This document shows positions 9,759 to 42,670 of a stretch of DNA of 61,133 nt, in pieces. Origin of the DNA: Anaeramoeba ignava BMAN (taxonomy: Eukaryota > Protista > Anaeramoebae). The DNA lies in assembly GCA_028826165.1 (NCBI GenBank), contig JAPDFW010000034.1, forward strand, positions 1 through 61,133, written 5' to 3'. A program made the position numbers and the translations under genes. Numbering within the stretch: the first letter of the stretch is position 1; each line of letters begins with the position of its first letter. Under the pieces are notes generated by a model. That model saw nothing but the letters and a program-made list of their open reading frames with translations, did no database searches and was not told the DNA's origin.

Positions 9759-9918
9759 ATGTTAAATCAAAATGAATTCATTTTACAAATTATTGAATCA
9801 ATTAAAAAAGAACAATTTCAAGAATCAATTTTAAATGAAATTTCAAAAGATCGTTCAAAAACTCAAAAATTCATTTCATTTTCAAAAGAAATTCCAATTA
9901 ATTTAAAAGAAATTCTTA
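9759..9918 (+). CDS. TSC1: 5' part of exon 1 of the TSC1/hamartin-like gene, cut off by the transposon insertion
   Basis: MLNQNEFILQ...NLKEIL; joining 9918 to 30103 (removing the element and one TA) gives in-frame ...KEILKLEKNLKENL... Confidence 0.75.
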
Positions 9919-9958
9919 CAGTCGTTTTCGATCAACCAAGGACAAAAAAAGGAAAATT
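9919..9958 (+). repeat. Left terminal inverted repeat
   Basis: Matches the reverse complement of 30061-30100 at 33 of 40 positions. Confidence 0.9.
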
Positions 9959-10605
9959 TAAAAAAAAATAATAAAAATTTTTTTAAATTTTATTAAATTT
10001 TTTTTTAATTGAAAAAATTCAATGAAATTTTTATGTTAAAAAACACGTGTTAGTTTTTTAATAAGATTTGCCATTTAAATTTTATAATAGTTTTTAAAAG
10101 GTTTTTTAAATGAAAAATACAGTTAAAATTTCTTTTAAATTTCTAATTTAAATTTTAATTAAAAAATACAGTTAAAATTTCTTTTAAATTTCTTATTTAA
10201 ATTTTAAATAAAAAAACAAATTAAAATTTTTCTATTTCGTTTATTTTAAACTAATTAACAAATCTAATTAAAATTTCTTTTTAATTTCTTTTATTTTAAT
10301 GTAGCTTTTTAAACAAAAATTAAAATTAAAATTAAAATTAAATTCCATTTTCACTTCAAAGATCAATTTCTGTGCTTTTTTATGAACAAATTTGGAATGT
10401 AGTTTCTAATAAATATTAACTTTAGTTACTTAAAACATTTAAAGAATACTAAAATCAACCAAAATTTTGTTTTAATTCATTTTGTTTTTATTTAAAGTAG
10501 TTATAAAAAATTATAACTATAATTCCCAAATCAATAAACAATTTTAAATCAAAATCTAAATTAAACAAATTTTTTTCTATTTCTTTTTTCTATTTCTTTT
10601 TTTTG

Positions 10606-10810
10606 ATGAACAACATACCTTTTCAAAACAAACAACCGAAAAAATAAAACGGACTTTTGTTTAATAGTTAACAATAATCCATCTTAGCAATAATTAAAAT
10701 CCTTGTTTAGTGTGCAGATATTTGTGTTAATAATTTTATATTGAATATCAAAAATCCTTTTTTTTCAACAACTGAAAAAAACAATTCCAGAAAAAAGGAA
10801 AACATATCCA
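10606..10810 (+). pseudogene. Degenerate copy of the transposase N-terminus
   Basis: MNNIPFQNKQPKK*NGLLFNS*Q*SILAIIKILV*CADICVNNFILNI aligns with MINNIPFQNLQVNKQKGLFFNGYSYPILTVIEILICFAEFCVNDLILNI at 17278; upstream non-coding DNA (10040-10600) also resembles 16858-17150. Confidence 0.8.
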
Positions 10811-11008
10811 CATAAGAAAGTAGCATTTTTGATAGGATCTCCTTATTATAATCTTCTTTCCAAAATACTTTCCCAAACAGAAATTTGCTTATATCGACAA
10901 CAATATGGAGTTGAAAATCGCAGTCAACTGATGCTAAAAGAGGAGAAAAGAAAATAAAAAATCTCAATACTTATCTCTCAAAAAAATTGATATGCAGGAG
11001 TGTTTATG

Positions 11009-14000
11009 TTTATAATAATATTTATAATGAATATTTATAATAATATTTATAATAATATTTATAATAATATTTGTAATAATATTTATAATAATATTTATAA
11101 TAATATTTATAATGAATATATATAATAATATTTATAATAATATTTATAATAATATTTATAATAATATTTATATAATAATATGTGAATATATATATAATAT
11201 TTATAATAATATTTATAATGAATATTTATAATAATATTTATAATAATATTTATAATAATATATATAATAATATAATATAATAATATATATAATATATTTA
11301 TAATAATATTTATAATATAATAATATATATAATAATATTTATAATGACAATATTTATAATAATATTTATAATAATATTTATAATAATACCCATATATAAT
11401 AATAATATTTATATTTATAATAATATTTATAATAATATATATATATTTATAATAATTTATAATATTTTATAATAATAATATTTTATAATAAATATAATAA
11501 TATTTATAATAATATTTATAATATATTTATAATGAATATTATAATAATATTTATAATAATATTTTAATAATATTTATAATGTATTTAATAATATTTATAA
11601 TAATATTTATAATAAATATATTTTATAATATTTATAATAAATATTTATAATAATATATATAATAATATTTATATATAATAATATATAATAATATTTTATA
11701 TAATAATATATATAATAATATTTATAATAATAATATTTATAATAATATTTATAATAATATTTATTTATAATAATATTTATAATAATATTTATAATATTTA
11801 TAATATTTTATAAATAATAATTTATAATAAATTTATAATAATATTATTTATATAATATATAATAATATAATAATAATAATATTTATAATAATATTTATAA
11901 TATTTATAATAATATTTATAATAATATTATAATAATAAATTTTATAATATATAATATTTTATAATAATATTTTATAATAATATTTATAATATATTTATAA
12001 TAATATATATAATAATATTTTATAATAATAATATTTATAATAATAATATTTATAATATATTTATAATAATATTTATAATAATATAATATTTATAATAATA
12101 TTTATAATAATATTTATAATTATATAATAATAATATAATAATATTTATATAAAATATAATATTTATAATAATATTTTATAATAATGTTTATTATAATAAA
12201 TATATAATTAAAATTTATATATTATAATATAAATAATATTTATAATAATATTTATAATATATAATAATATATATATATAATAATATTTAATAAATAATAT
12301 TTATAATAATATTTTATATAATATAATATATATAATTTATAATAATTATATATAATAATATTTATAATAATATTTATAATAATATTTATAATAATATTTA
12401 TAATAATATTTATAATAAATATAATATATATAATAATATTTATAATAATATTTATAATAATATATTTATAATAATATAATAATATTTAATAATTAAATAA
12501 TAATTATAATTTATAAATAATATTTATAATAATATTTATAATAATATATATATAATAATATTTATAATAATATTTATAATAATATATTTATAATAATAAT
12601 ATTTATAATAATATTTTAATAATATTTATATTTATAATATATATTTATAATAATATTATTTATAATAATATTTATAATAATATTTATAATAATATTTATA
12701 ATAATATTTATAATAATATTTATAATTTATTATAATAATAATTTATAATAATATTTATAATAATTTTTTAATATATTTATAATTAAATTTATAATAATAA
12801 TATTTATAATAATATTTATAATAATATTTATAATAATATTTATATTTATAATAATATTTATAATAATATATTAATATTTATAATAATATTATTTTATAAT
12901 TAAATATAATTATATTTATAATAATATTTATAATAATATTTATATAATAATATTTATAATAATATTTATAATAATATTTATAATAATATATATAATAATA
13001 TTTATAATAATTTATTTATAATATATAATAATATTTATATAATAATATTTATAATAATATTTATAATAATATTTATAATAATATATATAATAATATAATA
13101 TATTTATAATAATATTTATAATAATATTTATAATAATATTTATAATAATATTTATAATAATAATTTTATAATTATTTTAATTAATATTTATAATAATATT
13201 TTTAATATTTATAATAATATTTATAATAATATTTATAATAATATATATAATAATATATTTATATTAATATTTAAATTTTATAATAATATTTATAATTAAA
13301 TTTATAATAATATTTATAATAATATTTATATTTTTATAATATTTATAATATATATAATAATATTTATAATAATATAATATTTATAATAATATTTATATAA
13401 TTAATATTTATAATTAAATTTATTTAAAATAATATTTAATAATTAATATTTATAATTTATATTAATAATTATAATTAATATAATAATATTTATAATAAAT
13501 TTATAATAAAATTTATAATAATAATTTATATAATATTTAAATTTATAATTAAATTTATAATTAATATTTATAATTATAATAATAATAATCAATATTTATT
13601 ATTAATAATAATATTTATATAATTTAAATTAATAATTAAATTTATAATTAAAATATTTATAATAAATTTATAATAAAATTTATTATAATTAAATTTATTT
13701 AAATTAAATAATAAATTTTATAATAATTATTTATAATATTTATAATGAATATTTTAATAATTAAATTAATAATATTTATAATTGATATTTATAATTAAAA
13801 TATAAATTTATAATATAATTTATAATAATATTAATTAATATTTATAATAATATTTACTTAATATATTAAATAATATTTATAATAATATTTATAATTATAT
13901 TTATAATTAATATTTTATAATAATATTTATAATAATATAATAAATATTTATAATAATAAATTATAATAATATTTAATATATTATAATAAATATTAATTAA

Positions 14001-14220
14001 AATTTATAATAATATTTATAATAATTATATTAATATTTATAATTAATGAATATTTTTAAATTTTGATAATAATATTTAAATTTATAAATAATATTTAATA
14101 TTTATAATATTTTAATAATAATTTTATAATTAAATTACAATAAATTTAAATTTAATATTTATAATAATATTTATATTTTTATCGGAATATTTATAATAAT
14201 ATTTATAATAATAAATTTAT
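11009..14220. repeat. Noisy AT-only satellite, 12-mer (ATAATATTTATA)n
   Basis: Visible tandem repeat with many indels; probably poorly polished sequence. Confidence 0.8.
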
Positions 14221-14229
14221 ATAATAATA

Positions 14230-16070
14230 TTTATTAAATTTATAATTAAATTGATAATTAAAATTGATAATTAAATTTTATAATAAATTTAAATATGATA
14301 ATTAAAATTAATAATTATTAAATTAATAATTAAATTGATAATTAAATTGGTATTTAAATTTTATAATTAAATTGATTAATAATTATATATAATAAATTTA
14401 TAAATATATAAATTTATAATTAAATTGATAATTAAATTGTTATAATTTTAAATTGATATAATAAAATAAATTGATAATAAATTGTATATATATAATTGTT
14501 AATGATAATTAAATTTATAATTAAATTGATATTAAATTGATAATTAAATTGATAATTAAATTATTAATATTTAAAATTAAATTGGTATAATTAAATTGAT
14601 AATTAAAATTGATAATAAATTTATAATAAAATTGATAATTAAATTATATAATTAATATTTATAATAATAATTGTATTTATAATGTAAATAATAAATTTAT
14701 AATAAATATTATAAATTGATAATTAAATTTTGATAATAAATTGATAATTAAAATGTTAAATTAATATTGATAAATTTAAAATTGATAATTAAATTGATAA
14801 TTAAATTTGATAAAATTGATAATCAAATTGATATATTAAATTTATAATTAAATTGATATTTTAAAATAAAATATTTGGTAATTAAAATTATAATTAAATT
14901 GATATTTATAATGAAATTTAATAACAATTTGATAATTACAAAATTGATAATTAAATAAAATAATAATTAAATTTATAATGCGAAATTGAATAATTAAATT
15001 ATAATAATATTGATAATTAAATATTAAAAGATTAAAATATTTATATAATAAAAAATTAAATTGATAATTAAATTAAATTTAAATTAATTTGATAATATTT
15101 GGTAAATTGTTAATTAAAATTGATAATTAAATTGTTAATAATTAAATTGGTAAATTAAAATAATATTGATTAAAATTTAAATAAATTATTATAATAATAT
15201 TAAATTGATAATTGGAAATTAATAAATTGATAATAAATTTAAATTGATTAAATTGATAATAAAATTGATAATTAAATTGATAATTATTAAATTGATATAA
15301 TAAATTAATAAATTGATAATTAAATTGATAATTAAAATTGTTATAATAAATTGTATAATTAATTTGTTATTGATAATTAAATTTATAATAAATTGATAAT
15401 TAAATTGATAATTAAATTGTTAATTAAATTGATAATTAAAATTGATAATTAAATTGATAATTTAAAATTTGATAATTAAGGAGTTGATAATTTAAATTGT
15501 TAATTAAATTGTTAATTAAATTGATAAATTGATAATAAAATTGATAATTAAATTGGTAATTAAATTGATTAAATAAATAATTAAATTGATAATTAAAATG
15601 ATAACAAAATTTGATAATTGATAAAATTGGATAATTTTTAATTATAAAATTGATAATAAATTAAATTGATAATTAAATTGTTAATAAATTATAATTAAAT
15701 TGATAATTAAATTGATAATTAAATTGATAATTAAATTAATAATTAAATTGATAAATAATTATATTGATAATTAATATTGTATAATTAAATTGATAATTAA
15801 ATTGATAATTAAATTGATAATAATAAATTAATAAATTTTAATTAAATTGATAATTAAATTGTGATAATTAAATTTATAATAATATAAATTGGTATAATAA
15901 ATTGATAATTAATTAATTGATAATTAAATTGATAATTAAATTGATAATTAAAATTGATAATGAAAATTGATAATTAAATTTATAATTAAATTGTTAATTA
16001 AATTGATAATTAAATTGATAATTAAATTGATAATTAAATTGATAATTAAATTGTTAATTAAATTGATAAT
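14230..16070. repeat. Noisy copy of the 12-mer satellite (AATTAAATTGAT)n
   Basis: Same unit as 25737-29243. Confidence 0.8.
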
Positions 16071-16840
16071 CAATATTTCAAGTAAAAGATACAAAAACAG
16101 AATCAAAAAGTCAAATAAAAGCACACACAAACACTAATAATCGAACTTATAATCGAATTTATAATCGAACTAATAATCGAACTTATAATCGAACTAATAA
16201 TCGAACTAATAATCGAACAAACAAAAGCAAAAATATATACTCGAAACTTATAGAAGCATATAATAAGAATACTAAAAACTATTCTATTTTAAGGTTAAAA
16301 AATAGATAAATGCTCAAATAATTAAACTATTAATTAAATTATTATTGAATCCATAAATGTACACAATTCGAGCACAAAACTATCACGAAAATAAATATAT
16401 AAGCAACTTAATATTTGTAAAAGGAGGATATTAAATAAAAAGAATGAAAAAAAATGAAAAAGAAAAAAAGGGAAAAAATTTTTTTTTTGAAATTTTTTTT
16501 TTAAAAAACCCTGAAAACAATTTAACTCAAGATTTGGAAAAGGTTTCATAAATTAATATCCATTTAAAACTTACTTCAATAAAGATATACAGTTAATGAG
16601 AAATTAAATAAATAGAAAATAAATTAGATTTTTCATAAAACAATTATAAACCACTTTTTAATAATAAACAATCAAACAAATAGAAAGTAGAATATTTATA
16701 AGAAAAATATAGCGATTAAGACACATTTATTTTATAATAGGGTAAAGAAATAAATTGTATAAATTGAGATTGGCCTGGCAAATGAAAAAATTTTTATTAA
16801 AATTTTATTGAATTTTTTATTGAAATTTTTATAAAATTTT
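16071..16840 (+). repeat. About 770-bp direct repeat, copy 1 (right-subterminal block of the transposon without its TIR)
   Basis: Near-identical to 29244-30011, including the (TAATCGAACTAA)n mini-array and GATTGGCCTGGCAAATG. Confidence 0.92.
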
Positions 16841-17277
16841 TATTAAATTTTTATTAAAGAATACGTGTCAATTTTTCAATTAGATTTTTAATTTAAATTT
16901 ATAATTGTTTTTAAATAAGGTTTTTAATTCAAAAACTTAATCAAAATGCTATTCTTCTTTTACTTTTAATTGAAATAATATGAAAATTTAGTTATTAAAA
17001 ACAATAACAAAAATAACAAAAACAACTAAAATTTTGTTTTATTTCTTTTTTTTTTATTTAAATTAGTTATAAACAATTATAACTAATAATTCATAAATCA
17101 ATAAACAAACAATTTTAAATCAAAATACAAAATAAAAAAAAATTTTTTTTTTTGCTTTTTCTGATCTTTGTTTATTTATTGATCCATTTTTTTTCATTCA
17201 TTTTTCTAATTCATTTTTCTAATTTTTTTTCATTCATTTTTCTAATTCTTTTTCTAATTCTTTTTATAATTCTTTTT

Positions 17278-19221
17278 ATGATAAATAACATACCTTTTCA
17301 AAATCTGCAAGTGAACAAACAAAAAGGTCTTTTCTTTAATGGATATTCATACCCAATCTTGACAGTCATTGAAATCCTTATTTGCTTTGCTGAATTTTGT
17401 GTTAATGATCTGATCCTCAATATCCCACGTCCTTCTTTCCGGGAAATGGAAGACCAATTTAAAAAAGGCAAAACATTCTTAAACAGATTGTATAATCTGT
17501 TTGTTTCCAAACTATTTCAAATATCACAAGAATTGATCCATATAACAGAAGTGACTCTACCCGAAATTATTGTTGAAGCAATTTTCCAGACGACAGAAGA
17601 ATACTGGACTAAAAAATACATATCAAATTCTCAAAATCATTCCCAAAAAAAAATCAAAGAAAATCATCAAGCATTTATTCAAAATCAAATAGAGAATACC
17701 CCAGAAATTTTTCTCAAAGAGTTAAAATCAAAGCTAGCCAATACTTTTGATTTAGATGTTTCCCTTTCAACAATATACAAGCATTTATCAAATGAAATGG
17801 GATTTACTAAAAAAAAAATGAATCTGCGAGCACCACGCAAATATGAACCAGAGAACATGGAATACTATCAAATGTTTTATCTGCTTATGCAGAACATATT
17901 TGCCCACTATCCTCTTGATCGAGTCTTTTTTCTTGACGAGACAGGTGTGAACCTCCATAACGCCTACAGAACAACTGGATGGTCCAGTAAAGGGAAAAAA
18001 ATAATTGCTCCTTTCTTTAATAGAAACCAAAAATACAGAATAAATTCCATTTGCACCTTTTCTATTTTGGGATTTATCTCTTTAGACTCTCATAAAAGTA
18101 CAATCAATCAATGGTTGTTTTGGGAGTACATTCGGGATGTGTTATTTGCTCAGCTTCCTCCATCTAGCGTGCTTGTGATGGATAACTGTGCGATCCATCA
18201 CGCAATAGATTATGAAATGAAAACAATATTTGCAACAAAAGATATCATGCTTGTTTATCTCCCCGCATACTCGCCTGAGCTTAACCCTATAGAAATGGCG
18301 TTTGGAGTTATTAAGAAAATGCTGAAAAATCATACTGAAGAATTTATATCAAATCCGTTTAATACTTGGCATAAACTATTTAGTGAATTCAATGAAAACC
18401 AAAATTGCTTAAATTTTTTTCTAGAAGATTATCCATTTCTAAAGGATCCAAATTTTAAATACACACTTTCTGAAAATTTAAACAACAATTTTAATAATAA
18501 TTTTAACTTTCATTTTAATGATAATTTGAATGATAATTTGAATGATAATTTGAATGATAATTTGAATGATAATTTGAATGATAATTTGAATGATAATTTG
18601 AATGATAATTTGAATGATAATTTGAATGATAATTTCAACAATTTGAACATTAATTTAAACAACAACTTAAACAATTTTAATGATAATTTAAGCAACAATT
18701 TAAACAACAATTTAAACAATAACTTTAATGATAATTTAAATGATAATTTTAATGATAATTTAAATGATAATTTAAATGATAATTTTAATGATAATTTAAA
18801 CAACAACTTAAACAACAATTTTAATGATAATTTTAATGATAATTTCAATAATAATTTCAATAACAACTTCAACAACAATTTAAACAACAATTTAAACAAC
18901 AATTTAAACAACAATTTAAACAACAATTTAAACAACAATTTAAACAACAATTTAAACAACAATTTAAACAACAATTTAAACAACAATTTAAACAACAATT
19001 TAAACAACAATTTAAATAATAATTTAAACAATTTGAATGATAATTTTAATGATAATTTTAATGATAATTTTAATGATAATTTTAATGATAATTTCAACAA
19101 CAACTTAAACAACAATTTAAATGATAATTTAAACAACTTCAATAACAATTTAAACAACAATTTAAACAACAATTTTAATGATAATTTAAACAACAATTTT
19201 AATGATAATTTTAATGCCTGA
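17278..19221 (+). CDS. IS630/Tc1-family DDE transposase (DD36E) with HTH DNA-binding region and long Asn-rich C-terminal tail
   Basis: HTH-like PEIFLKELKSKL...VSLSTIYKHL...GFTKKK; catalytic motifs VFFLDETG, VLVMDNCAIHH and LPAYSPELNPIE with 36 residues between the second D and E; first ATG at 17278 (the earlier part of the ORF is T-rich leader). Confidence 0.93.
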   Translation: MINNIPFQNLQVNKQKGLFFNGYSYPILTVIEILICFAEFCVNDLILNIPRPSFREMEDQFKKGKTFLNRLYNLFVSKLFQISQELIHITEVTLPEIIVEAIFQTTEEYWTKKYISNSQNHSQKKIKENHQAFIQNQIENTPEIFLKELKSKLANTFDLDVSLSTIYKHLSNEMGFTKKKMNLRAPRKYEPENMEYYQMFYLLMQNIFAHYPLDRVFFLDETGVNLHNAYRTTGWSSKGKKIIAPFFNRNQKYRINSICTFSILGFISLDSHKSTINQWLFWEYIRDVLFAQLPPSSVLVMDNCAIHHAIDYEMKTIFATKDIMLVYLPAYSPELNPIEMAFGVIKKMLKNHTEEFISNPFNTWHKLFSEFNENQNCLNFFLEDYPFLKDPNFKYTLSENLNNNFNNNFNFHFNDNLNDNLNDNLNDNLNDNLNDNLNDNLNDNLNDNLNDNFNNLNINLNNNLNNFNDNLSNNLNNNLNNNFNDNLNDNFNDNLNDNLNDNFNDNLNNNLNNNFNDNFNDNFNNNFNNNFNNNLNNNLNNNLNNNLNNNLNNNLNNNLNNNLNNNLNNNLNNNLNNNLNNNLNNLNDNFNDNFNDNFNDNFNDNFNNNLNNNLNDNLNNFNNNLNNNLNNNFNDNLNNNFNDNFNA

Positions 19222-19538
19222 TTCAAGGAGAACTTTAATTCTCAATCTCACTTTAATTCAAATTCTAATAACAGCTATAATAATTATATTTCTCTATTTT
19301 CAATTTGAAATTCTTTTTTTTTCTTTTTTTCTTTCCAAATATTTGGATTTTTCACACAATAAGAAAAAACTATTAAAAAAAAAATTTTTTTTTGTTTTGT
19401 TTTGTTTTGTTTTGTTTTATTGGAAGGGATCCTCCCAGGAGTATCTTTCCAGCTTATGCTGGCATTTAAGAAATTTTTTTTATTTTTTTTCATTTTTCAT
19501 TTTTCAAGTACTAAACGACAATAATTAATTTCAAAGAA

Positions 19539-22299: not shown

Positions 22300-24267
22300 A
22301 CCAAGTAGAGAAGAATCACCCAAAAAAAGAAACAAAATAAAGCAAAAAAAATGAAGCGAATTCAATTTCTGCAACCAAATTTTGCTTTTCTACTTCTTCT
22401 TTTTTTACTTCTTCTTTTTTTACTTCTTCTTTTTTTACTTCTTCTTTTTTTACTTCTTCTTTTTTTACTTCTTCTTTTCCCAAATAAAATCCAATTCAAT
22501 TTCCAACTTCATTCAAGATTCTTTTAACTTTTTATTTTAATTTCATCAAAATTAAAAAAAACAATAATAATTATAATAATAATAATAGGAAACACATATT
22601 TTTTTTCTTCATTTCTTGAATATAGCAATATTGAACTAAAATATCCAATCAATGATATGTTTTCTAATCATTTCACTTATTCATTAATTTATTTTTATTT
22701 TTATTTTTATTTTTATTTTTATTTTTATTTTTATTTTTATTTTTATTTTTATATTTATCATTTTATCACAACTAATGTAGCATTGAAATAATGATTTATT
22801 TGATAGAAATTCACATTTAAGACAAGACGAAATTAAATATATTATGGAAGATATTCATATATTTTGATCTTTATTCAATTTTCAAATTGACAAAATCTAT
22901 AATATTTAGTATATTCATAATTTTTTTGATTCAATATATATAAGATAATACATCACAAAAAAAGGATCAATATCAAAAAATTTAAACAAACCATTTCTGT
23001 AGAAGCTTTTTTTTTTGAGAAGTGTGTCATTGTTCATCTTGAGATATTTTTGAGCATAAAAATATTGATTTACTTATTAATATTATTGTTTTCATATTCC
23101 TTGAGAAGTGAATTGTTTCTTTTTCTTTTTCTTTTCTTTTGTTTTTTTTTGTTCTTCATCTTTATCAATTTTAAGACTTGGAAAATCAGAGAAATATGAC
23201 AAGTCATTGAAAGTATTGGAATTATTATGACCAAAAGAAACAAGAAAGAAAGGAGAGAAACTAAATAAATTGTTTTTACCTTAGAATCGACCTAAATTTT
23301 TGCATTGATTTGTGATCTTACTCCCTATACTACAATGAAAGAAATTCCAATACAACTATTCATAAAGCATTCCCAAAGATAAGAAAATGACCATCCATTT
23401 TTCATAGTGTGAATACAAGAAGAATGTTTTTTTTTACAAATAATTCCTATAATTTTTATCAGATATAAACAAGTTGATTCTTTATCATTTTCTATGTAAT
23501 TCCTGATTTGTAAATGGATACTTTTTAAGTTGGTCTTTGTACTCATCTCATTTAAATTCACAATTTGAGTTTCATCATTCAATTATAGCTCTTTATTTCA
23601 ATATAGAATGTCATTATTATGTTGTCTCTTACAAAGAATGTTAGATCTGAAGAAAATATTCTTTGAGGGGATGTGAAAAGTAATCATCATTTATCTATGA
23701 TATACATTCAAATATTTCACGTATTTAATTGGCCACAAATTTGGGGAATCAGTTCCATAAACGTATATCCTGGGATGAATTTATGAGTTTTTCTTAATTA
23801 AAATATCAATAATATCACTAAAAGAATTATTATAAATTGGTTTCACACAACTTGATAATAATAAAAGGAAACAAAATTAACAGAAAAAGGTCAGTAACAA
23901 TCAACAATCTTAGTCATATACATATCCTATTAATTCATTTATATCTACATCCCCTCCTATCTATATTTTATTTACCTAAATAACAAAAATATCATCTCCT
24001 TTTTCATATTTACGAGAAAAATGAGTTAGTATAATAAAAATTTTTTTAAGAATTTGTTGTAGAAGCTAACAAAAAATTGTATCATCCTTTTTCTTTTTTT
24101 TTTGATCTAATCAGAACTCAGAAAAAGTTTTTCTGCATAAGAATTTTGATTATCGGGAAAATAGAATAGAGTTTACAAATTCAAAATATTGCTGATTGAA
24201 CAGGAGAAACAACTGAAAATTTTCAAAACAAAACAAAACGCAAAAAAAACAAAACAAAACAAAACAA

Positions 24268-24298
<31 letters not shown>

Positions 24299-24419
24299 CG
24301 CAAAAAAAAGGTATCAATGATTCTTATTAAACAGTAGCAATTTCAAGAAAAAATAAGATGGAAGATGAAAAGAAACAATAACAAAAGTCAAAATAAAAGA
24401 TGAGAATATCATAATATAT

Positions 24420-25200
24420 GCAATCAATATATATAATCAATATTTATAATATATATAATCAATATTTATAATATATATAATCAATATATATATAATCAAT
24501 ATTTATAATATATATAATCAATATATATATAATCAATATATATATAATCAATATATATATAATCAATATTTATATTATAAATATAATATATATAATCAAT
24601 ATATATATAATCAATATTTATAATATATATAATCAATATATATATAATCAATATTTACAATATATATAATCAATATATATATATATAATCAATATTTATA
24701 ATATATATAATCAATATATATATATATATATATATAATCAATATTTATTTATATTATAAATATAATATATATAATCAATATATATATAATCAATATATAT
24801 AATCAATATATATATAATCAATATATATATAATCAATATATATATATATAATCAATATTTATATATTATAAATATAATATATATAATCAATATATATAAT
24901 CAATATTTATATTATAAATATAATATATATAATCAATATATATATAATCAATATATATATAATCAATATTTATAATATAATAATAATATATAATAATATT
25001 TATATTATAAATATAATATATATATATATATATAATCAATATTTATATTATAAATATAATATATATAATCAATATTTATATAATCAATATATATATAATC
25101 AATATTTATAATATATAATAATAATATATAATAATATTTATATAATCAATATATATAATCAATATATATATTATAAATATAATATAATATAATATATATA
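24420..25200. repeat. AT-rich minisatellite based on ATATATATAATCAAT
   Basis: Visible tandem repeat. Confidence 0.8.
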
Positions 25201-25219
25201 ATAAAAAGAAAGACAAATA

Positions 25220-25595
25220 CAAATTCACCAATAAACTCACAAATAAATTCACCAATAAACTCACAAATAAATTCACCAATAAAAACCCAAATAAATTCAC
25301 CAATAAAAACCCAAATAAACGTACATATAAACGCCCATATAAACGCCCATATAAACGCCCATATAAACGCCCAAATAAACGCCCAAATAAACGCCCAAAT
25401 AAACGCCCAAATAAACGCCCAAATAAACGCCCATATAAACGCCCATATAAACGCCCATATAAACGCCCATATAAACGCCCATATAAACGCCCATATAAAC
25501 GCCCAAATAAACGCCCATATAAACGCCCAAATAAACGCCCAAATAAACGCCCAAATAAACGCCCAAATAAACGTACATATCAACACCCAAATAAA
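25220..25595. repeat. 12-mer satellite (A[A/T]ATAAACGCCC)n and related units
   Basis: Visible tandem repeat. Confidence 0.88.
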
Positions 25596-25736
25596 CACAT
25601 TAAAAAATACATAGATAGATATATTTGTAAGTGTAAATTGAAAATGAAAAAGATAAAGAATTGGAAGTTAAGATAATAGCTGAATACAAGAAAAAATTAA
25701 ATGAACTGTTAGCTAAATTTCTGAATGAAGTGTGCT

Positions 25737-28700
25737 AATTAAGTTGATAATTAAATTGATAATTAAATTGTTAATTAAATTGATAATTAAATTGATAATT
25801 AAGTTGGTAATTAAATTAGTAATTAAGTTGGTAATTAAATTGGTAATTAAATTGATAATTAAATTATTAATTAAATTGGTAATTAAGTTATTAATTAAAT
25901 TGGTAATTAAATTGGTAATTAAGTTGATAATTAAATTGGTAATAAAGTTGATAATTAAATTGATAATTAAGTTGATAATTAAATTGATAATTAAATTGGT
26001 AATTAAATTGGTAATTAAATTGATAATTAAATTGATAATTAAATTGATAATTAAATTGGTAATTAAGTTGGTAATAAAGTTGGTAATTAAGTTGGTAATT
26101 AAGTTGGTAATTAAATTGGTAATTAAATTGATAATTAAGTTGGTAATTAAGTTGGTAATAAAATTGGTAATTAAATTGTTAATTAAATTGGTAATTAAAT
26201 TGGTAATAAAGTTGATAATTAAATTGGTAATTAAATTGGTAATTAAGTTGATAATTAAATTGGTAATTAAATTGATAATTAAGTTGATAATTAAATTGGT
26301 AATTAAGTTGATAATTAAATTGATAATTAAGTTGTTAATTAAGTTGATAATTAAATTGATAATTAAGTTGATAATTAAATTGGTAATAAAGTTGATAATT
26401 AAATTGATAATTAAATTGGTAATTAAATTGATAATTAAATTGATAATTAAGTTGATAATTAAATTGTTAATTAAATTGGTAATTAAATTGGTAATTAAAT
26501 TGATAATTAAATTATTAATTAAATTGGTAATTAAGTTATTAATTAAATTGGTAATTAAATTGGTAATTAAGTTGATAATTAAATTGGTAATTAAATTGGT
26601 AATTAAATTGGTAATTAAATTGTTAATTAAGTTGGTAATTAAATTGATAATTAAATTGGTAATAAAGTTGATAATTAAATTGATAATTAAATTGATAATT
26701 AAATTGATAATTAAATTGATAATTAAATTGATAATTAAATTGTTAATTAAATTGATAATTAAATTGGTAATTAAATTGATAATTAAGTTGGTAATTAAGT
26801 TGGTAATAAAATTGGTAATTAAATTGTTAATTAAATTGGTAATTAAATTGGTAATAAAGTTGATAATTAAATTGGTAATTAAATTGGTAATTAAGTTGGT
26901 AATTAAGTTGATAATTAAATTGATAATTAAGTTGATAATTAAATTGGTAATTAAGTTGGTAATTAAATTGATAATTAAGTTGATAATTAAATTGATAATT
27001 AAATTGATAATTAAGTTGGTAATTAAATTGATAATTAAATTGATAATTAAGTTGATAATTAAATTGGTAATTAAGTTGGTAATTAAGTTGATAATTAAGT
27101 TGATAATTAAATTGATAATTAAATTGATAATTAAATTGATAATTAAATTGGTAATTAAGTTGGTAATTAAATTGATAATTAAATTGGTAATTAAATTGGT
27201 AATTAAGTTGGTAATTAAGTTGATAATTAAATTGGTAATAAAGTTGATAATTAAATTGGTAATTAAGTTGGTAATTAAATTGGTAATTAAATTGGTAATT
27301 AAATTGGTAATTAAATTGGTAATTAAATTGGTAATTAAGTTGTTAATTAAGTTGATAATTAAATTGGTAATTAAGTTGGTAATTAAGTTGATAATTAAAT
27401 TGGTAATAAAGTTGGTAATTAAATTGATAATTAAATTGGTAATTAAGTTGGTAATTAAATTAGTAATTAAGTTGGTAATTAAGTTGATAATTAAATTGGT
27501 AATAAAGTTGGTAATTAAATTAGTAATTAAGTTGGTAATTAAATTGGTAATTAAATTGATAATTAAGTTGGTAATTAAATTGGTAATTAAATTGGTAATT
27601 AAATTGGTAATTAAGTTGGTAATTAAATTGATAATTAAATTGGTAATTAAATTGATAATTAAGTTGATAATTAAATTGATAATTAAATTGATAATTAAAT
27701 TGATAATTAAATTGGTAATTAAGTTGGTAATTAAATTGGTAATTAAATTGATAATTAAGTTGATAATTAAATTGGTAATTAAGTTGGTAATTAAGTTGGT
27801 AATTAAGTTGGTAATTAAATTGGTAATAAAGTTGGTAATTAAGTTGATAATTAAATTGGTAATAAAGTTGGTAATTAAATTGGTAATTAAGTTGGTAATT
27901 AAATTAGTAATTAAGTTGATAATTAAATTGATAATTAAATTGGTAATTAAGTTGGTAATTAAATTGGTAATTAAATTGATAATTAAGTTGATAATTAAAT
28001 TGGTAATTAAGTTGGTAATTAAGTTGGTAATTAAGTTGGTAATTAAATTGGTAATTAAGTTGGTAATTAAGTTGATAATTAAATTGGTAATAAAGTTGAT
28101 AATTAAATTGGTAATTAAATTGATAATTAAATTGATAATTAAATTGTTAATTAAATTGGTAATTAAATTGGTAATTAAATTGGTAATTAAATTGGTAATT
28201 AAATTGGTAATTAAATTGGTAATTAAGTTGATAATTAAATTAGTAATTAAATTGGTAATTAAGTTGATAATTAAATTGGTAATTAAGTTGATAATTAAAT
28301 TGGTAATTAAATTGGTAATTAAATTGGTAATTAAGTTGATAATTAAATTGGTAATTAAGTTGGTAATTAAATTAGTAATTAAGTTGATAATTAAATTGAT
28401 AATTAAATTGGTAATTAAGTTAGTAATTAAATTAGTAATTAAGTTGATAATTAAATTGATAATTAAATTGATAATTAAATTGGTAATTAAATTGGTAATT
28501 AAATTAGTAATTAAATTGTTAATTAAGTTGGTAATTAAGTTGATAATTAAATTGATAATTAAATTGATAATTAAATTGGTAATTAAGTTGGTAATTAAAT
28601 TGGTAATTAAATTGGTAATTAAATTGATAATTAAATTGTTAATTAAATTGATAATTAAATTGTTAATTAAATTGATAATTAAATTGATAATTAAATTGTT

Positions 28701-29243
28701 AATTAAATTGATAATTAAATTGATAATTAAGTTGGTAATTAAATTGGTAATTAAGTTGGTAATTAAATTGGTAATTAAATTGATAATTAAGTTGATAATT
28801 AAATTGGTAATTAAGTTGGTAATTAAGTTGATAATTAAATTGATAATTAAATTGATAATTAAGTTGATAATTAAATTGGTAATTAAATTATTAATTAAAT
28901 TGGTAATTAAATTGGTAATTAAATTGGTAATTAAATTGGTAATTAAATTGTTAATTAAATTGATAATTAAATTGTTAATTAAATTGTTAATTAAATTGTT
29001 AATTAAATTGTTAATTAAATTGATAATTAAATTGGTAATTAAATTGTTAATCAAATTGATAATTAAATTATTAATTAAGTTGGTAATTAAATTGTTAATT
29101 AAATTGATAATTAAATTGATAATTAAATTGATAATTAAATTGATAATTAAATTGATAATTAAATTGGTAATTAAATTGATAATTAAATTGATAATTAAAT
29201 TGATAATTAAATTGATAATTAAATTGTTAATTAAATTGATAAT
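25737..29243. repeat. 3.5-kb phased 12-mer satellite (AATTAA[A/G]TTG[A/G/T]T)n
   Basis: About 290 units without loss of phase; source of the spurious 1188-aa and 1233-aa ORFs. Confidence 0.95.
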
Positions 29244-30011
29244 CAATATTTCAAGTAAAAGATACAAAAACAGAATCAAAAGTCAAATAAAAGCACACAC
29301 AAACACACTAATAATCGAACTTATAATCGAACTAATAATCGAACTAATAATCGAACTAATAATCGAACTTATAATCGAACTTATAATCGAACAAACAAAG
29401 CAAATATATACTCGAACTTATAGAAGCATATAAGAATACTAAAAAAAACTATTCTATTTTAAGGTTAAAAAATAGATAAATGCTCAAATAATTAAACTAT
29501 TAATTAAATTATTATTGAATCCATAAATGTACACAATTCGAGCACAAAACTATCACGAAAATAAATATATAAGCAACTTAATATTTGTAAAAGGAGGATA
29601 TTAAATAAAAAGAATGAAAAAAAATGAAAAAGAAAAAAAGGGAAAAAATTTTTTTTTTGAAATTTTTTTTTTAAAAAAACCTGGAAAACAATTTAACTCA
29701 AGATTTAGAAAAGGTTTCATAAATTAATATCCATTTAAAACTTACTTCAATAAAGATATACAGTTAATGAGAAATTAAATAAATAGAAAATAAATTAGAT
29801 TTTTCATAAAACAATTATAAACCACTTTTTAATAATAAACAATCAAACAAATAGAAAGTAGAATATTTATAAGAAAAATATAGCGATTAAGACACATTTA
29901 TTTTATAATAGGGTAAAGAAATAAATTGTATAAATTGAGATTGGCCTGGCAAATGAAAAAATTTTTATTAAAATTTTATTGAATTTTTTATTGAAATTTT
30001 TATAAAATTTT
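29244..30011 (+). repeat. About 770-bp direct repeat, copy 2 (right-subterminal block)
   Basis: Near-identical to 16071-16840. Confidence 0.92.
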
Positions 30012-30060
30012 ATAAAATTTTTTTGGGTTTGAAAAAAATTTTATAAAAAATTTCTTTAAA

Positions 30061-30100
30061 AATTTCGTTTTTTTTGTCCTTGGTTGAAAAAAAATGACTG
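30061..30100 (-). repeat. Right terminal inverted repeat
   Basis: TTTTTTTGTCCTTGGTTGAAAAAAAATGACTG followed by TA. Confidence 0.9.
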
Positions 30101-30101
30101 T

Positions 30102-32549
30102 AAATTAGAAAAAAATTTAAAAGAAAATTTAATAAATTTAAATGAAAATTTATCAAAAATTATTTGTTATTTGAATTATTTTTATCAAATGATTTGCAAG
30201 TTTCAATATAATTTACTTAAAGGAAATATTGATGAATGGCTAAATGTTTTAAAATCCTTTATTGATTTTAAAAATATTCAATTATTTAAATTGATGAAAA
30301 AAATTTTTATTCAATTATTATTAAAAAAAGATTATGAAAATTTCCATTTTTTATTTCTTTATTATTTCGAAAATGATTCAGAAAATGTTTTTAAAATATT
30401 TACAAAGTTTATTAAATTAGATTCTTATGTAATTAATTTATTATTTAAAAAAAACAAAAATTGGAAATTTTTTTAAAATTTGAAAATTTTATTTAGTGTT
30501 TTTTTGACCAAATGAATCAAATTTTAAAACATAAACATTATCAAAGTGTTTGTGTTAATTTAATTTTAAAAATGATGGTTTTAATTGAAGTAAATTTTTT
30601 TATTAAAATAAAAATTTAATTGAAAAATATTTAATTGAAAAAAAATTTTTAAAAGAAAAATCAAATTGCTTCAATTATGGATACTTCTTTATTTTCATCA
30701 TTAATTTCAATCTCAAAATCAGATAAAAATACTCTTGATATCATTTCTTCTACTTGGATACTTTGTATTATAATTTCAACTTTTCAAAATCCACATTTAA
30801 TTTCAAAACATCAAAAAGATTTTTTCCAAATATTTCAAAGATTAATAATTATTTCAAATGAAAGAAAAACTAAATCTCAAATAACAATAGATACACTAAA
30901 AAATTATATCAAAGAATTCCAAATTCAAAATCAAAATAATTCTTTCTATTCCAAAAAAAGAAACTCAATTCAAAATGATGATGATCCTTTTCTTTTTATA
31001 AATTATATTGAAATAATTTCAAATATCAAGAAAAAGAACAAGAATCAATTAAGAATTTAAAAAATTTTCAATTGAAAAATTATCAAAATATTATTCATCA
31101 TCTTCATTTTATTCATTTAAAAAAATGTATAACTGAACTTTTAATTCTTTTATATGGATATTTTCCAAAAGAGTTTATTGATTTAATTCATAAAGAATAT
31201 TCATCTAAAAAATCAAAACAAAGATTTGATTTAATTTCTTCATTTTTGAATAATTTATTTGTTCATCCAAAACTTTTTGATGATAAATTTGAAAATTATG
31301 AAGAAGTTATTCAAAAAATTAAGACTCATTTTGTTCAAGAAAATTTAAATTTAAATTTAGATTTAGATGAAAATGAAAATGAAGATGAAAATGAAAATTT
31401 AAATGAAAATTTAAATGAAAATCAAAATCAAAATCAAATTGATTCAATAGAAGAAAATATAAAAACTTCACAAGAAATGATTCTAATATTAAATAACTTT
31501 CAACAAAATTGTCAATTTAAAATTAAACCTTCAATTTTCCAAAATTTGAAAAAAAGTTTAAAAGATATTGATTTAATCAAAATGGAAAAAAATCAACTTG
31601 ATATTCAACAATTATTACAAGAAAACAATACATTAAAATGTTCTATACTTTGTCTTGAAAACGAAGTCATTTTCCACAATTTTTTACTTAATAATTATTT
31701 AATTTTAAATCTCAAACAAAACTCACAAAATAATATCCAAATCAAACAAGAAAATGTAATTGAAAATTTTAAAGCAACTGAAACAATCCAAAATAAAATC
31801 ATAATGGAAACAAAAGAACAACTTCAATTCCTTCAAAAAATTCTTGTTGAAAATGAAAAAAACCAAAAACTAAATGAACAAAAATATCTCAATAAACTTG
31901 AAAAATTTGCAACAGAAAATCATAATTTGAAAAGAAGTAATATCATTTTACAAAGAAATTTAGATGAAGATCGACTTATAAGTCAAAATTTAAACAAACA
32001 ACTTAAAATTTCTCAATCAAAAGTGTTTCCTTTAGAAATCAAAATTAGATATTTAATGGAAAAAATCCAAAAACTTCAATCAATCAAAGAAAAGAATAAA
32101 ATTCTTAAAGCAAATCTCCAAATATCAAGTACAATGTCTCAATTTTATCCTTTAATTGTTGAGCAAAATAAAGATCTTGAAAATGAAAATTTATTCAAAA
32201 ATCAAAAATCAAAGAATTGAATTCAAAAATTTAAATTATGAATCAAAATTATTTAAATTGCAAAATGAAATTGAAAATTTTGAAATCAAAATATCTTCTC
32301 TTCAAAAATCAAATTCTGATTTCCAAAAAGAACCAAGAATTATATTCTTCTTTAATTAAACAACAAAGTTCATTTCAACAAAATATTCGAAATATTCAAA
32401 CTAAATATGAAAATGTTGTTGAAGATTCATTAAGAAAAGACAGAAAAATTTTGGAATTGGAATCAAAATTGGAAACTATTCAAGTTAAATTATTTTCAAC
32501 AAATCGTGAAAGTTCTTTATTAAATGAAAATGAAAATTTAAAAAAATAA
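30102..32549 (+). CDS. TSC1: TSC1/hamartin-like protein, remainder of the gene (N-terminal helical core plus C-terminal coiled coil); interrupted allele
   Basis: LFSSLISISKSD...DFFQIFQRL...FIHLKKCITELLILLYGYFPKEFIDLIHKEYS...LFVHPKL resembles the hamartin motifs [31 protein letters not shown] and VRIHPEL; introns 30429-30496 and 30590-30655 are in frame; homopolymer frameshifts near 31020 and 32200-32340. Confidence 0.75.
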
Positions 32550-35867: not shown

Positions 35868-36398
35868 TTTCATATTTTTCATTTTTTTTTCAAAATTCAA
35901 TTTTATTTTCATTTACTTTCAATCAAATAAAATTCTTCAAATTAATAAATAAGAAACAAATCTAAATTTAAAATAATAAATTTAAAATAAATTATTATTA
36001 AAATTAAATATTTATCTTTATTAAAATATTTATTCCACTTTTTTTTAATATTTTTTTTATAATTAAAATTAAATTAATAAATAATTAAAAATATTAATTT
36101 AATAAATAAAATAATTATTTCAATTTAAAATAAAATAAATTTAAAATAAATTATTATTAATTATTATTAAAATTAAATATTTATCTTTATTAAAATATTT
36201 ATTCCACTTTTTTTTTATTATTTTTTTATAATTAATATTAAATTAATAAATAATCAAAAATATTAAATTAATAAATAAATTCAATTTAAAATAAATTGTT
36301 ATTAAAATTCTATTTTTTTTTTGTGATTAAAATATTTTTTATTCAATTTAAAATGAAATGAAATGAAATGAAATTTTTATTTATCTTTATTAAAATTG

Positions 36399-38859: not shown

Positions 38860-38978
38860 TAAAATTTTAAAATTCAAAAAAAGAAAAAATGAAAAATGAA
38901 AAATGAAAAATTTTTTTTAATCAAATTTCTTTTTTTGAATTGAATTTGATTTGATTTGATTTTTTTTTTTGAAGTTTT

Positions 38979-41900: not shown

Positions 41901-42184
41901 TTTTTCCACTGTTTTAAGAACATTTCTTAAAGTTGCAATGTGGGATTTCTCGTCATTAAATTGTTTGATTTCTTTTTTTTTTTTTTGGAAGAATTTTTAA
42001 TTGAATTTGCTTTTTTCTTTAAAAAAAATTTTTTTTTGGATTTTTTACTTTCTAAAGGTTTTTCAAGTGCTTCTATTCTTTCAATTAATCTTTTCGCTTC
42101 TACTTTCGTTTCTTTATATTCATCGAATTTATTTTTAATCCAACAACCAATTTCAAATATTTTTTCAATAATTTCAAGAGCCAT
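38979..42184 (-). CDS. MLKL-like/HeLo four-helix bundle + EF-hand pair + U-box + TPR repeats + coiled coil + TLDc protein; 4 exons
   Basis: Introns 41972-42048, 41428-41508 and 41245-41319 join the ORFs in frame; EF loop FQAWDLNHDKRLDQYEL; U-box IPDHL...ILHDPVSIKENSYERKDIERIL...NLGLKDAINEW; TPR AIWCLKQGIAYAK...AIQSFQRAFEVDPD; TLDc SAIKDGFSSQNWHKAVDGKGKTL...FIFGGFT...GPCFG...ELETYFI. Confidence 0.8.
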
Positions 42185-42670
42185 AAAATTTGCTAAAAGA
42201 AAAATGAAAAAAAAAAAGAATTTGAATAAAAAATAAGAAAAGAATCAACTCTTTTTTTTTGGAAATTAAAAATTAATTACAAAAATAAAAAAGCAAAAAA
42301 TTGTTTTTTTTTCTTTTGTTTTTTCAGTTAAATGATCAAATTTTTATTTTCCAAAACTTCAAAAAAATCCTTTCCTTTCAACAAAACTAACATTTTCCTT
42401 TAATTCATCTTCTGGATCAAAGAATCAAATTTTTGCTTTTTTTTTATTTAAAAAAAGAAGAAAAATGGAAAAAAAAAAAAATTTCTTTTGAAATAAATTT
42501 CTCCATTAAAAAAATCAATATTTAATTCATAAAAACTCAAATTTGAATATAAATAGCTTTTTATAAAATAATTTTTAATTTAATTTAATTAACGAAAACA
42601 AAATTTCAATAAAAATTTATTATTAAAAAATTTTTTCATTTTTTTCTTTTTTCCTTTTTAAAACTATAAA

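Follow-up and report, generated by a model that had tools for sequence, protein, structure and literature searches.

A 20.2-kb IS630/Tc1/mariner-type insertion with a head-to-tail composite structure in a hamartin-like gene of Anaeramoeba ignava

Among transposons, Tc1/mariner/IS630 elements are the standard example of small size and a single gene, at a usual length of 1–3 kb. A stretch of about 20 kb bounded by ends of this type and lying in a coding exon of Anaeramoeba ignava BMAN, a deep-branching, anaerobic protist for which we know of no description of mobile DNA and of no genetic tools, raises the question of whether so large a unit was inserted in one piece and what made it large. The initial annotation of the window (the whole stretch of DNA analysed here, 61,133 nucleotides, contig C36) took it for a transposon with genes and satellite DNA as cargo, and possibly for a member of an undescribed giant family.

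Ends, empty site and host gene

The element occupies positions 9919–30100 of the window (20,182 bp), with TA on either side and imperfect terminal inverted repeats (TIRs) that both start with CAGTC; the left end reads TA followed by CAGTCG from 9919, and the reverse complement closes at 30100, next to the second TA. The two arms are identical at 28 of the 32 terminal positions, as initially proposed, and beyond them a weaker, gapped end-to-end similarity reaches about 126–141 nt. Two exact copies of the 18-mer core TCAACCAAGGACAAAAAA are present in the window, against 0.35 expected, and the same two, inverted and corresponding to the element ends, are the only exact copies in the 42.8-Mb genome; the remaining genomic matches all carry 2 mismatches and do not exceed the control in frequency, so that the search for further TIR copies, suggested at the outset, found none. 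In a scan of window positions 5–36 kb, 9919/30100 was the top TA-flanked inverted pair around the transposase; a smaller element nested around the transposase was rejected, as the runner-up pair, 17179/22970 (19/24, T-rich), appears to be a chance match.

The features at the borders of the insertion are as follows:

9759–9918, plus strand: host exon, left part, with the ATG at 9759 and the left TA copy at 9917–9918
9919–9950, plus strand: left TIR, with weaker subterminal similarity to the right end until about 10045
30069–30100, minus strand: right TIR, its core unique to the two ends
30101–30428, plus strand: host exon, right part, with the right TA copy at 30101–30102, up to the splice donor after ...KLDSY

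The window is collinear with positions 36222–72100 of another contig of the same assembly, C67 (36.2–72.1 kb). At C67:46318–46400, 38 nt of the left flank and 36 nt of the right flank meet over a single TA, exactly at the predicted empty site, and the exon is uninterrupted there, with an open reading frame of 177 codons from ATG to stop. Excision of 9919–30102 with a local script gives the open frame ...KEILKLEKNL..., and C67 has exactly the rejoined sequence; the earlier claim that the host frame fixes both boundaries independently of the TIRs is thereby confirmed. Since C67 carries the intact exon with a single TA, the insertion on C36 is real and polymorphic, and the occurrence of the filled and the empty site within one assembly is an unusually clean proof of insertion. 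The interrupted gene is hamartin (TSC1)-like, and the insertion sits in its first coding exon, in one of two copies of the locus that differ by about 1% (0.5–0.9% in the flanks, 13/1515); C36 and C67 may be alleles or may stem from a recent segmental duplication, and the ploidy is given as unknown in the genome paper. Two other explanations of the interruption were rejected. The ends fit the TAYAGYNR pattern that ciliate internal eliminated sequences follow, but the genome is that of Anaeramoeba, with the standard code; a 20-kb intron is contradicted by ends other than GT-AG and by the continuous coding sequence of C67.

Gene content and satellite arrays

Between the TIRs, the following features were recognized, A and B denoting two copies of the element and X1 and X2 two copies of a subterminal block:

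9966–10776, plus strand: copy A head, a diverged duplicate (71–83% at the nucleotide level) of 16780–17438
11009–16070, no strand: satellite block 1, 12-mers TTTATAATAATA, then AATTAAATTGAT; GC 0–8%
16028–16852, plus strand: X1, which repeats the right subterminal block inside the element (808/816 positions shared with X2)
16853–17277, plus strand: copy B head, 5′ region of the transposase gene, without a left TIR
17278–19221, plus strand: transposase gene, single exon, 647 codons, matching Pfam DDE_3 and NCBIfam IS630
19769–22299, plus strand: ORF2, three predicted exons (about 19769–19979, 20064–20345 and 20453–22299)
22300–24412, no strand: non-repetitive spacer without a long ORF; its last 176 bp (24224–24399) are 90% conserved in a fragment on contig C74
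24413–29243, no strand: satellite block 2, 13–15-mers (24413–25202), AATAAACGCCCA (25230–25596) and the 12-mer TAATTAAATTGG (25736–29243)
29201–30022, plus strand: X2, right subterminal block, a 99% repeat of X1, in which the public gene model P0064 starts

The reading frame of the transposase is uninterrupted and comprises a core of about 400 amino acids and an Asn-rich repeat tail from about position 18475. The protein matches DDE_3 (PF13358; 1.4e-22, 80.5 bits against a cut-off of 28.6) and IS630 (NF033545; 106.7 bits against a cut-off of 100), the latter a model that fungal Tc1-like proteins also pass and that therefore cannot separate IS630 from Tc1. In an alignment (A1) of P0001–P0003 with fungal Tc1-like and IS630 proteins, the transposase start and the catalytic columns line up, and D262, D344 and E381 (positions in the ORF that runs from 17152) do not vary; the second D and the E are separated by 36 residues, within the superfamily range of about 32–41 for this second spacer. 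A PDB search with the single transposase sequence gave no match, and only the family profile reached the catalytic domains of Sleeping Beauty (SB100X, 8e-11) and Mos1. Helix-turn-helix matches at residues 122–185 were below threshold (HTH_33, 0.019; HTH_Tnp_Tc3_2, 0.02; HTH_32, 0.15). Identity to any protein outside A. ignava is at most 31%, and an N-terminal extension of about 120 amino acids is common only to the A. ignava paralogs. On these sequence features the transposase appears intact, with its ends defined, and the TIRs, the TA duplication and the DDE_3 transposase together indicate that the element is an IS630/Tc1/mariner-type insertion in the nuclear genome. This part of the initial annotation stands: 20.2 kb of DNA with TIRs and a TA duplication, inserted into a coding exon and bearing an intact transposase. 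Its list of contents holds as well (a DDE transposase, a spliced second gene and about 10 kb of satellites, which total 9.7 kb).

The two predicted introns of ORF2 are of the GT-AG type, 84 and 107 nt long, and its start coordinate is provisional, an upstream ATG being present at 19540 in another frame. The predicted protein contains a CX2CX7HX3C motif, long Asn/Gln repeats and a Lys-rich C-terminus. Neither the ORF2 exons nor the other ORFs of the element match a Pfam family at E values up to 5, and ORF2 had no family in the ESM Atlas, in a word-indexed protein search or in an exhaustive HMMER search; exact-match queries with candidate gene products and queries of gene context in this genome gave no match, and no tRNA genes were found in the element. 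In its own genome and 1.84 billion representative proteins, the sole relative of ORF2 is the decayed C74 fragment, which argues for a gene of the element and not for host cargo, and the earlier view of the second gene as a moved passenger is not borne out. ORF2, an orphan, is probably an accessory gene of the element, and its product possibly binds nucleic acid, given the CCHC-like motif and the basic tail.

Tandem arrays at 11009–16070, 24413–25202, 25230–25596 and 25736–29243 make up about half of the element. Arrays resembling block 1 are present on many other contigs, and similar satellites occur at dozens of genomic loci without a linked transposase, whereas the C74 fragment lacks all of block 2 at the corresponding junction. 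This distribution makes growth in place likelier than capture and goes against the idea of satellites as cargo: the 9.7 kb of AT-rich repeats would have expanded within the non-coding spacers of the element, as in intergenic DNA genome-wide. The arrays beside X1 and X2 differ in their unit, with one G as against two G per 12-mer and a GC content of 5–8% as against 15–17%.

Composite structure and the size of the inserted unit

The element is a head-to-tail composite, in which a truncated and diverged left copy (A) is fused to a complete right copy (B). Copy A consists of the left end, the 5′ region, a remnant of transposase codons 1–58 (at 10603–10776), satellites and X1, and copy B of the 5′ region, the transposase, ORF2, the spacer, satellites, X2 and the right end. 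The relationship between the two heads, which differ by 17–29%, is apparent from blastn blocks, from tblastn (50% identity, E 3e-12) and from an alignment score of 480 against at most 299 for shuffles. X1, an 825-bp block that holds a 20-codon mini-exon (16357–16416) followed by a GT, ends 78 bp before the position of a right tip, and the inner junction lacks the last 78 bp of A and approximately the first 110–260 bp of B, so that neither inner inverted repeat is left. The size of the element owes much to this fusion of two diverged copies and to the 99% internal repeat.

The divergence of the heads, compared with about 1% between the copies of the locus, points to a fusion older than the insertion, and the inserted unit would then already have been composite and at least about 10 kb long without its satellites. 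As only the two outer ends are left to pair, the entire unit would have to move as one piece; the transposase would pair these ends and move the composite as one unit, a step suggested by this single polymorphic insertion, the only trace of movement. The element is thus probably a genuine cut-and-paste insertion of a head-to-tail composite, moved as a unit, with internally grown satellites and with ORF2 as an accessory gene.

A rather unlikely alternative is that an ordinary multi-gene Tc1/IS630 element of about 6–10 kb was inserted, and that the satellites and the X duplication accrued later, so that nothing of 20 kb was ever transposed. Satellite turnover is fast, the units of the arrays by X1 and X2 having diverged although the X blocks themselves are still 99% identical; the relative on C74 is compact; and the divergence between X1 and X2 (8/816, 1%) is not clearly older than that of the flanks, the two values being too close for ordering the events. 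Against later growth, the fusion of A and B predates the insertion, as indicated by the head divergence and by the TA duplication at the outer ends, and the non-satellite part alone amounts to about 10 kb. The same satellite family also precedes both X blocks, from which it follows that an array existed before the X duplication. If the preferred reading, insertion of the composite as a unit, is correct, ordinary 32-bp Tc1-type ends delimited a unit of about 20 kb, and of no less than about 10 kb, that was inserted into a gene; fusion of two copies head to tail, with the inner ends lost, would be a route to such large units, and the case suggests that a DNA transposon can carry satellite arrays along.

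Relatives in the genome and comparison with known systems

The genome contains one copy of the element and the decayed fragment on C74, in which the 5′ and 3′ parts of ORF2, the end of the spacer and X are contiguous within 1.6 kb, without satellites. Only six DDE_3 loci were found, among them four to five transposase paralogs, 35–48% identical, on C26, C51, C40 and C146. Around these paralogs, no TA-flanked inverted pair or TIRs were detected within 10 kb, nor any CAGT-type end or left-TIR-like sequence within 3 kb upstream; the search combined blastn self-comparison (mostly noise), scans for TA+CAGT and TA+CA pairs, exact inverted seeds and TA-flanked 24-mers.

That the element belongs to a giant IS630/Tc1-like family of Anaeramoeba that habitually carries genes and satellite arrays as cargo is distinctly improbable. 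The paralogs sit on small contigs (49–74 kb), like the element itself, and satellites of the same 12-mer family extend for about 5.6 kb downstream of the one on C26, in the same relative orientation, with at least 12 kb around this paralog that have no second copy in the assembly; DNA searches with two C26 loci returned only satellites and a dispersed repeat, and no second haplotype. Set against this are the paralogs without detected ends, the TIR core, head and X block without further intact copies elsewhere in the genome, the orphan status of ORF2, the compact C74 fragment and the many transposase-free satellite loci. Of the giant cargo-carrying family initially proposed, the 20.2-kb insertion holds and the family is not supported. 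A wider proposal, that A. ignava has a currently active DD36E IS630/Tc1-like lineage whose members regularly reach 15–26 kb through copy fusion and satellite growth and transpose as units, is speculative and unlikely. Such elements would be, to our knowledge, the largest natural members of the superfamily, and would spread kilobase satellite arrays, along with promoter/exon modules that read outward (block X), into genes.

It is very improbable that the junctions are real and the interior is in part an assembly artefact, the assembler having looped via the satellite and the X repeat around a shorter true insertion (for example 9919–16852 joined to 30023–30100, a non-autonomous element of about 7 kb, with the transposase part coming from elsewhere). 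The interior is known from one assembly, built from early Nanopore reads with ABruijn 1.0, and this concerns above all the two 99% identical X blocks, each preceded by kilobases of similar 12-mer satellite; the contig was, however, polished and checked by long-read mapping (PMC11550330), the transposase, ORF2 and 16853–29200 are found nowhere else in the assembly, and the systematic difference between the units of the two arrays shows that a single array was not assembled twice.

With Tc1-like elements of fungi and animals and with bacterial IS630, the A. ignava element shares the DDE_3 transposase with its D,D,E residues, the TA duplication, the CAGT ends, the cut-and-paste logic and an empty site with a single TA; it differs in its 20.2 kb, two genes, tandem repeats and two-copy structure, and in the N-terminal extension and Asn-rich tail of the transposase. 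In ciliates, the IS630-Tc1 elements Sardine (about 6.7 kb, up to 4 ORFs), Anchois (3.6 kb, 3 ORFs), Tec and TBE likewise combine such a transposase with element-specific extra ORFs and are TA-bounded, and insertions within coding sequence are known (PMC3464196). Sardine and Thon are labelled DD35E (PMC3464196), as against a spacing of 36 here, and the A. ignava element is three times larger, its ORF2 has no recognisable domain, programmed excision is not known for it, and the tyrosine recombinase ORF of the Tec/Sardine type was not found in it (Pfam, E up to 5).

In bacterial composite transposons, two IS copies move the intervening DNA (PMC6431247, PMC9977792), and the outer ends of two copies similarly bound one larger mobile unit. 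The A. ignava copies, in contrast, are head-to-tail and abutting, with no foreign DNA between them and with copy A truncated; both inner ends being deleted, they can no longer move separately. In hAT macrotransposition in maize, two neighbouring elements contribute one end each, of opposite kind, and a much larger segment is mobilised. This process and the foldback-bounded 'TE' units of Drosophila (mentioned in PMC6431247) resemble the present case in that the ends of neighbouring elements mobilise a far larger segment, but they concern another superfamily and carry host DNA, whereas the A. ignava unit holds only element sequence and satellites. Starships, Mavericks/Polintons and Teratorn, the giant eukaryotic transposons (PMC6431247), also exceed 10 kb and have more than one gene; theirs are many, and they rely on tyrosine recombinases, retroviral-type integrases or piggyBac transposases. 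The terms Tc1, mariner and IS630 have 0 occurrences in that 2019 review (PMC6431247).

The public annotation of C36 has been misled by the insertion, and the hamartin-like gene is split. The left part of the host exon, the same as in C67 up to the single TA, is used by the NCBI model P0065, while P0064 starts in the mini-exon of X2 (29527–29586) and is spliced from there, past the right TIR, to the host exon at 30201, outside the element; the chimeric models draw on an exon within the element and on the TIR's GT.

Ends of the element and its empty site on contig C67

Directly after a TA, the element begins with CAGTCG at 9919, and the reverse complement of this sequence closes it at 30100, where a second TA follows. 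The terminal inverted repeats (TIRs) agree at 28 of their first 32 positions, with a gapped similarity that extends over about 130 nt. The window contains two occurrences of the 18-nt TIR core, against 0.35 expected; these two, which lie at the ends of the element in inverted orientation, are also the only ones in the genome. When the window was scanned between 5 and 36 kb for inverted pairs that are flanked by TA and enclose the transposase, 9919/30100 came out best. The CAGTC-type TIRs with flanking TA proposed in the initial annotation are borne out, and the search it recommended for further TA-flanked copies elsewhere lent no support to a family. A weak TA-flanked inverted pair at 17179/22970 (19/24, TTGATCC and then a T-run) encloses only the transposase and the second gene, ORF2 (5.8 kb); it was judged a chance occurrence in T-rich DNA, though it was the sole candidate for an inner boundary.

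The whole contig under study, C36, is collinear with positions 36222-72100 of C67, another contig of the same assembly, at 92–98% identity. On C67 a second, 100% identical copy of the interrupted exon's right half lies in a longer open frame. At C67:46318-46400, the 38-nt left flank and the 36-nt right flank of the element adjoin over a single TA, exactly matching the empty site that had been predicted; the sequence at the insertion site is AATTCTTAAATTAGAA. This stretch of C67, which is uninterrupted and contiguous natural DNA, forms a 177-codon ORF from ATG to stop that is not a chance frame, because stop codons are expected at about 10% per codon at this base composition (own calculation); the frame across the element-free site was checked by translating the joined host flanks with a local script. 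In the immediate flanks, the substitution divergence between C36 and C67 is 0.5–0.9%. The two contigs, whether alleles or duplicates of very recent origin, are thus polymorphic for an insertion of 20,184 bp, namely 9919-30100 with one TA, and since C67 carries no footprint and the gene is intact there, the insertion is the derived state. C36 (61,133 bp) belongs to a 42.8-Mb assembly of 147 contigs; according to the paper on the Anaeramoeba ignava genome (PMC11550330), the assembly was built from Nanopore data with ABruijn, its A+T content is 80.65% and the ploidy is unknown. The window itself is extremely AT-rich (about 15–27% GC in coding stretches and less than 5% in spacers), and the standard genetic code is used.

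Composite organization and gene content

The element is a truncated copy A fused head-to-tail to a complete copy B, with both inner ends gone.

Parts of the two fused copies, from left to right
Copy A: left TIR, head, transposase remnant, satellites, X1
Copy B: head without TIR, transposase, ORF2, spacer, satellites, X2, right TIR

The repeated blocks X1 (16028-16852) and X2 (29201-30022), identical at 808 of 816 positions, each follow kilobases of 12-mer satellites from one family, whose units contain a single G in the array that precedes X1 and two in the one that precedes X2. The distance from the end of X2 to the right tip is 78 bp, and X1 breaks off at the corresponding position. The segment 9966-10776 is a diverged copy of 16780-17438 (71–83% at the nucleotide level, with an alignment score of 480 compared with at most 299 in shuffles); within it, transposase residues 1-58 survive as a remnant (50% identity, 3e-12). 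As the heads are 17–29% diverged, against about 1% between the two copies of the locus, the fusion would predate the insertion, and the unit that inserted would already have been composite. The interior of the element is read from one long-read assembly, in which the path might have looped wrongly through the X repeat; such an error is very improbable, given that the satellite arrays before X1 and X2 differ in unit sequence and that the assembly contains the transposase region only once.

The three kinds of content expected within the element, a DDE transposase, a spliced second gene and about 10 kb of satellites, were all recovered. The transposase ORF (17152-19221) has a Met at 17278, the position at which the A. 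ignava paralogs start in the alignment, and from there runs for 647 codons without interruption. The protein matches Pfam DDE_3 at 1.4e-22 and lies above the curated cut-off of the NCBIfam IS630 model; as fungal Tc1-like proteins also pass this model, the safe label is IS630/Tc1-like. All aligned sequences keep the catalytic D, D and E, the second D and the E being separated by 36 residues, and comparison of the family profile with the PDB points to the catalytic domains of Sleeping Beauty (8e-11) and Mos1 (2e-3). The best relatives outside A. ignava share no more than 31% identity.

For ORF2, two short exons precede the ORF at 20491-22299, with predicted GT-AG introns at 19980-20063 and 20346-20452; this three-exon structure was derived by reading the sequence, and the exons were searched one by one rather than as a joined model. 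Exon 3 carries, directly upstream of the ATG at 20491, a CX2CX7HX3C motif whose spacing differs from that of the canonical zinc knuckle. No Pfam family, ESM Atlas neighbour or word-index protein homologue was found for ORF2, and a search of 1.84 billion representative proteins returned a single match, KAJ5073611.1 (P0063), the product of a fragment on contig C74. We infer that ORF2 is an accessory gene of the element. The tandem arrays comprise 9.7 kb of non-coding satellite and 1.65 kb of coding Asn/Gln repeats; matches to the satellites, at 70–85%, lie at dozens of loci across the other contigs, and arrays like them abound in the rest of the window.

What is observed directly is a pair of ends, a duplicated TA, an empty site, a catalytic triad that is intact and a composite organization; in the most likely mechanism, the transposase would bind the two outer 32-bp ends and excise the whole unit, which would then integrate at TA, as for Tc1/IS630 elements. 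The loss of both inner ends would lock copies A and B into a single large mobile unit, and the satellites may have expanded by slippage or unequal exchange in non-coding spacers. The element agrees with the IS630/Tc1/mariner superfamily in every sequence-level test but that for the HTH domain, where the matches in the N-terminal part of the transposase are below threshold. It can be likened to a composite or macro-transposon in action, although it differs from the bacterial type in having lost its inner ends and in joining its two copies without foreign DNA between them. Among ciliate IS630-Tc1 elements, Sardine is about 6.7 kb long with up to four ORFs and Anchois 3.6 kb with three (PMC3464196); like these multi-ORF elements, the present one contains extra orphan ORFs, but unlike them it has no tyrosine recombinase, and it is three times their size. 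The Tc1/mariner/IS630 superfamily is unmentioned in a review of giant eukaryotic transposons (PMC6431247).

Relatives elsewhere in the genome

Only one full copy of the element is present in the genome, together with the following related loci.

Loci related to the element
C74:77100-78696 (L042-L044), minus strand: contiguous 1.6-kb fragment
C26:54426-55304: transposase paralog
C51:11195-12196: transposase paralog
C40:52185-53108: transposase paralog
C146:12443-13346: transposase paralog

The C74 fragment, annotated as the 143-aa hypothetical protein KAJ5073611.1, retains the 5' part of ORF2 (83%), its 3' part (81%), the end of the spacer (90%) and X (87–89%); satellites, transposase and TIR are missing, ORF2 is broken, and the CCHC-like motif has lost its first Cys and its His. 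It is a decayed, compact relative, and it shows that ORF2 and X are parts of the element. It also shows that the 4.9 kb of satellite DNA now separating the spacer from X was no original component.

DDE_3 loci number only six in the genome. The four paralogs are 35–48% identical, three of them being annotated as 'integrase protein-related', and no TIRs were found within 10 kb around them. The C26 paralog is followed by 5.6 kb of the element's satellite family, and for at least 12 kb around it the assembly holds no partner copy; both points slightly favour the existence of giant IS630/Tc1 elements elsewhere in the genome. The giant cargo-carrying family of the initial annotation is supported in part: the sequence observation, a real 20-kb insertion, stands, whereas there is one full copy, ORF2 is a gene of the element and the satellites are genome-wide.

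Two further observations concern contigs that carry paralogs. The regions C40:49012-56573 and C146:8989-16798 have flanks in common, inverted relative to each other, and encode nearly identical proteins (P0002 and P0003); the C40 locus probably duplicates the C146 region, as a second copy or haplotype, in the way that C36 does C67. A dispersed repeat of about 2 kb at C26:62545-64499 (L023:8046-10000) occurs on at least 14 contigs with 86–95% identity, often a few kb from the contig end (C2, C3, C110, C115, C57, C71), and may be a subtelomeric or mobile family.

Chimeric gene models and other differences between C36 and C67

On C36 the host gene is divided into two NCBI models.

Gene models across the ends of the element
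P0065, 100 aa: left host exon; donor at the GT within the CAGT of the TIR (9918-9922), joined to the acceptor at 10817 (10817-10954)
P0064, named hamartin, 261 aa: 20-codon start inside the element at 29527-29586 (X2), across the right TIR to 30201, then the next exon

P0064 scores 24.9 bits with Pfam Hamartin, for which the cut-off is 25.9, so that the name seems plausible but borderline. The same 20-codon mini-exon, followed by GT, recurs in X1 (16357-16416), 860 bp ahead of the transposase ATG; judging only from these public gene models, block X may be a promoter and first-exon module.

Downstream of the insertion, a 382-codon ORF (31072-32220) is intact on C36; on C67:47324-48512 its counterpart (87–93% identity) consists of three pieces that overlap but read in different frames and show TGA and TAA stops, reflecting either real frameshifts in that copy or assembly homopolymer errors. 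In a second presence/absence difference, the stretch 38905-42621 (3.7 kb, 27–32% GC) is missing from C67 at 56170-56178; no TIRs were seen, an A5-T6/7 microhomology is shared by the breakpoints, and a minus-strand ORF of 764 aa (38979-41273) lies within it.
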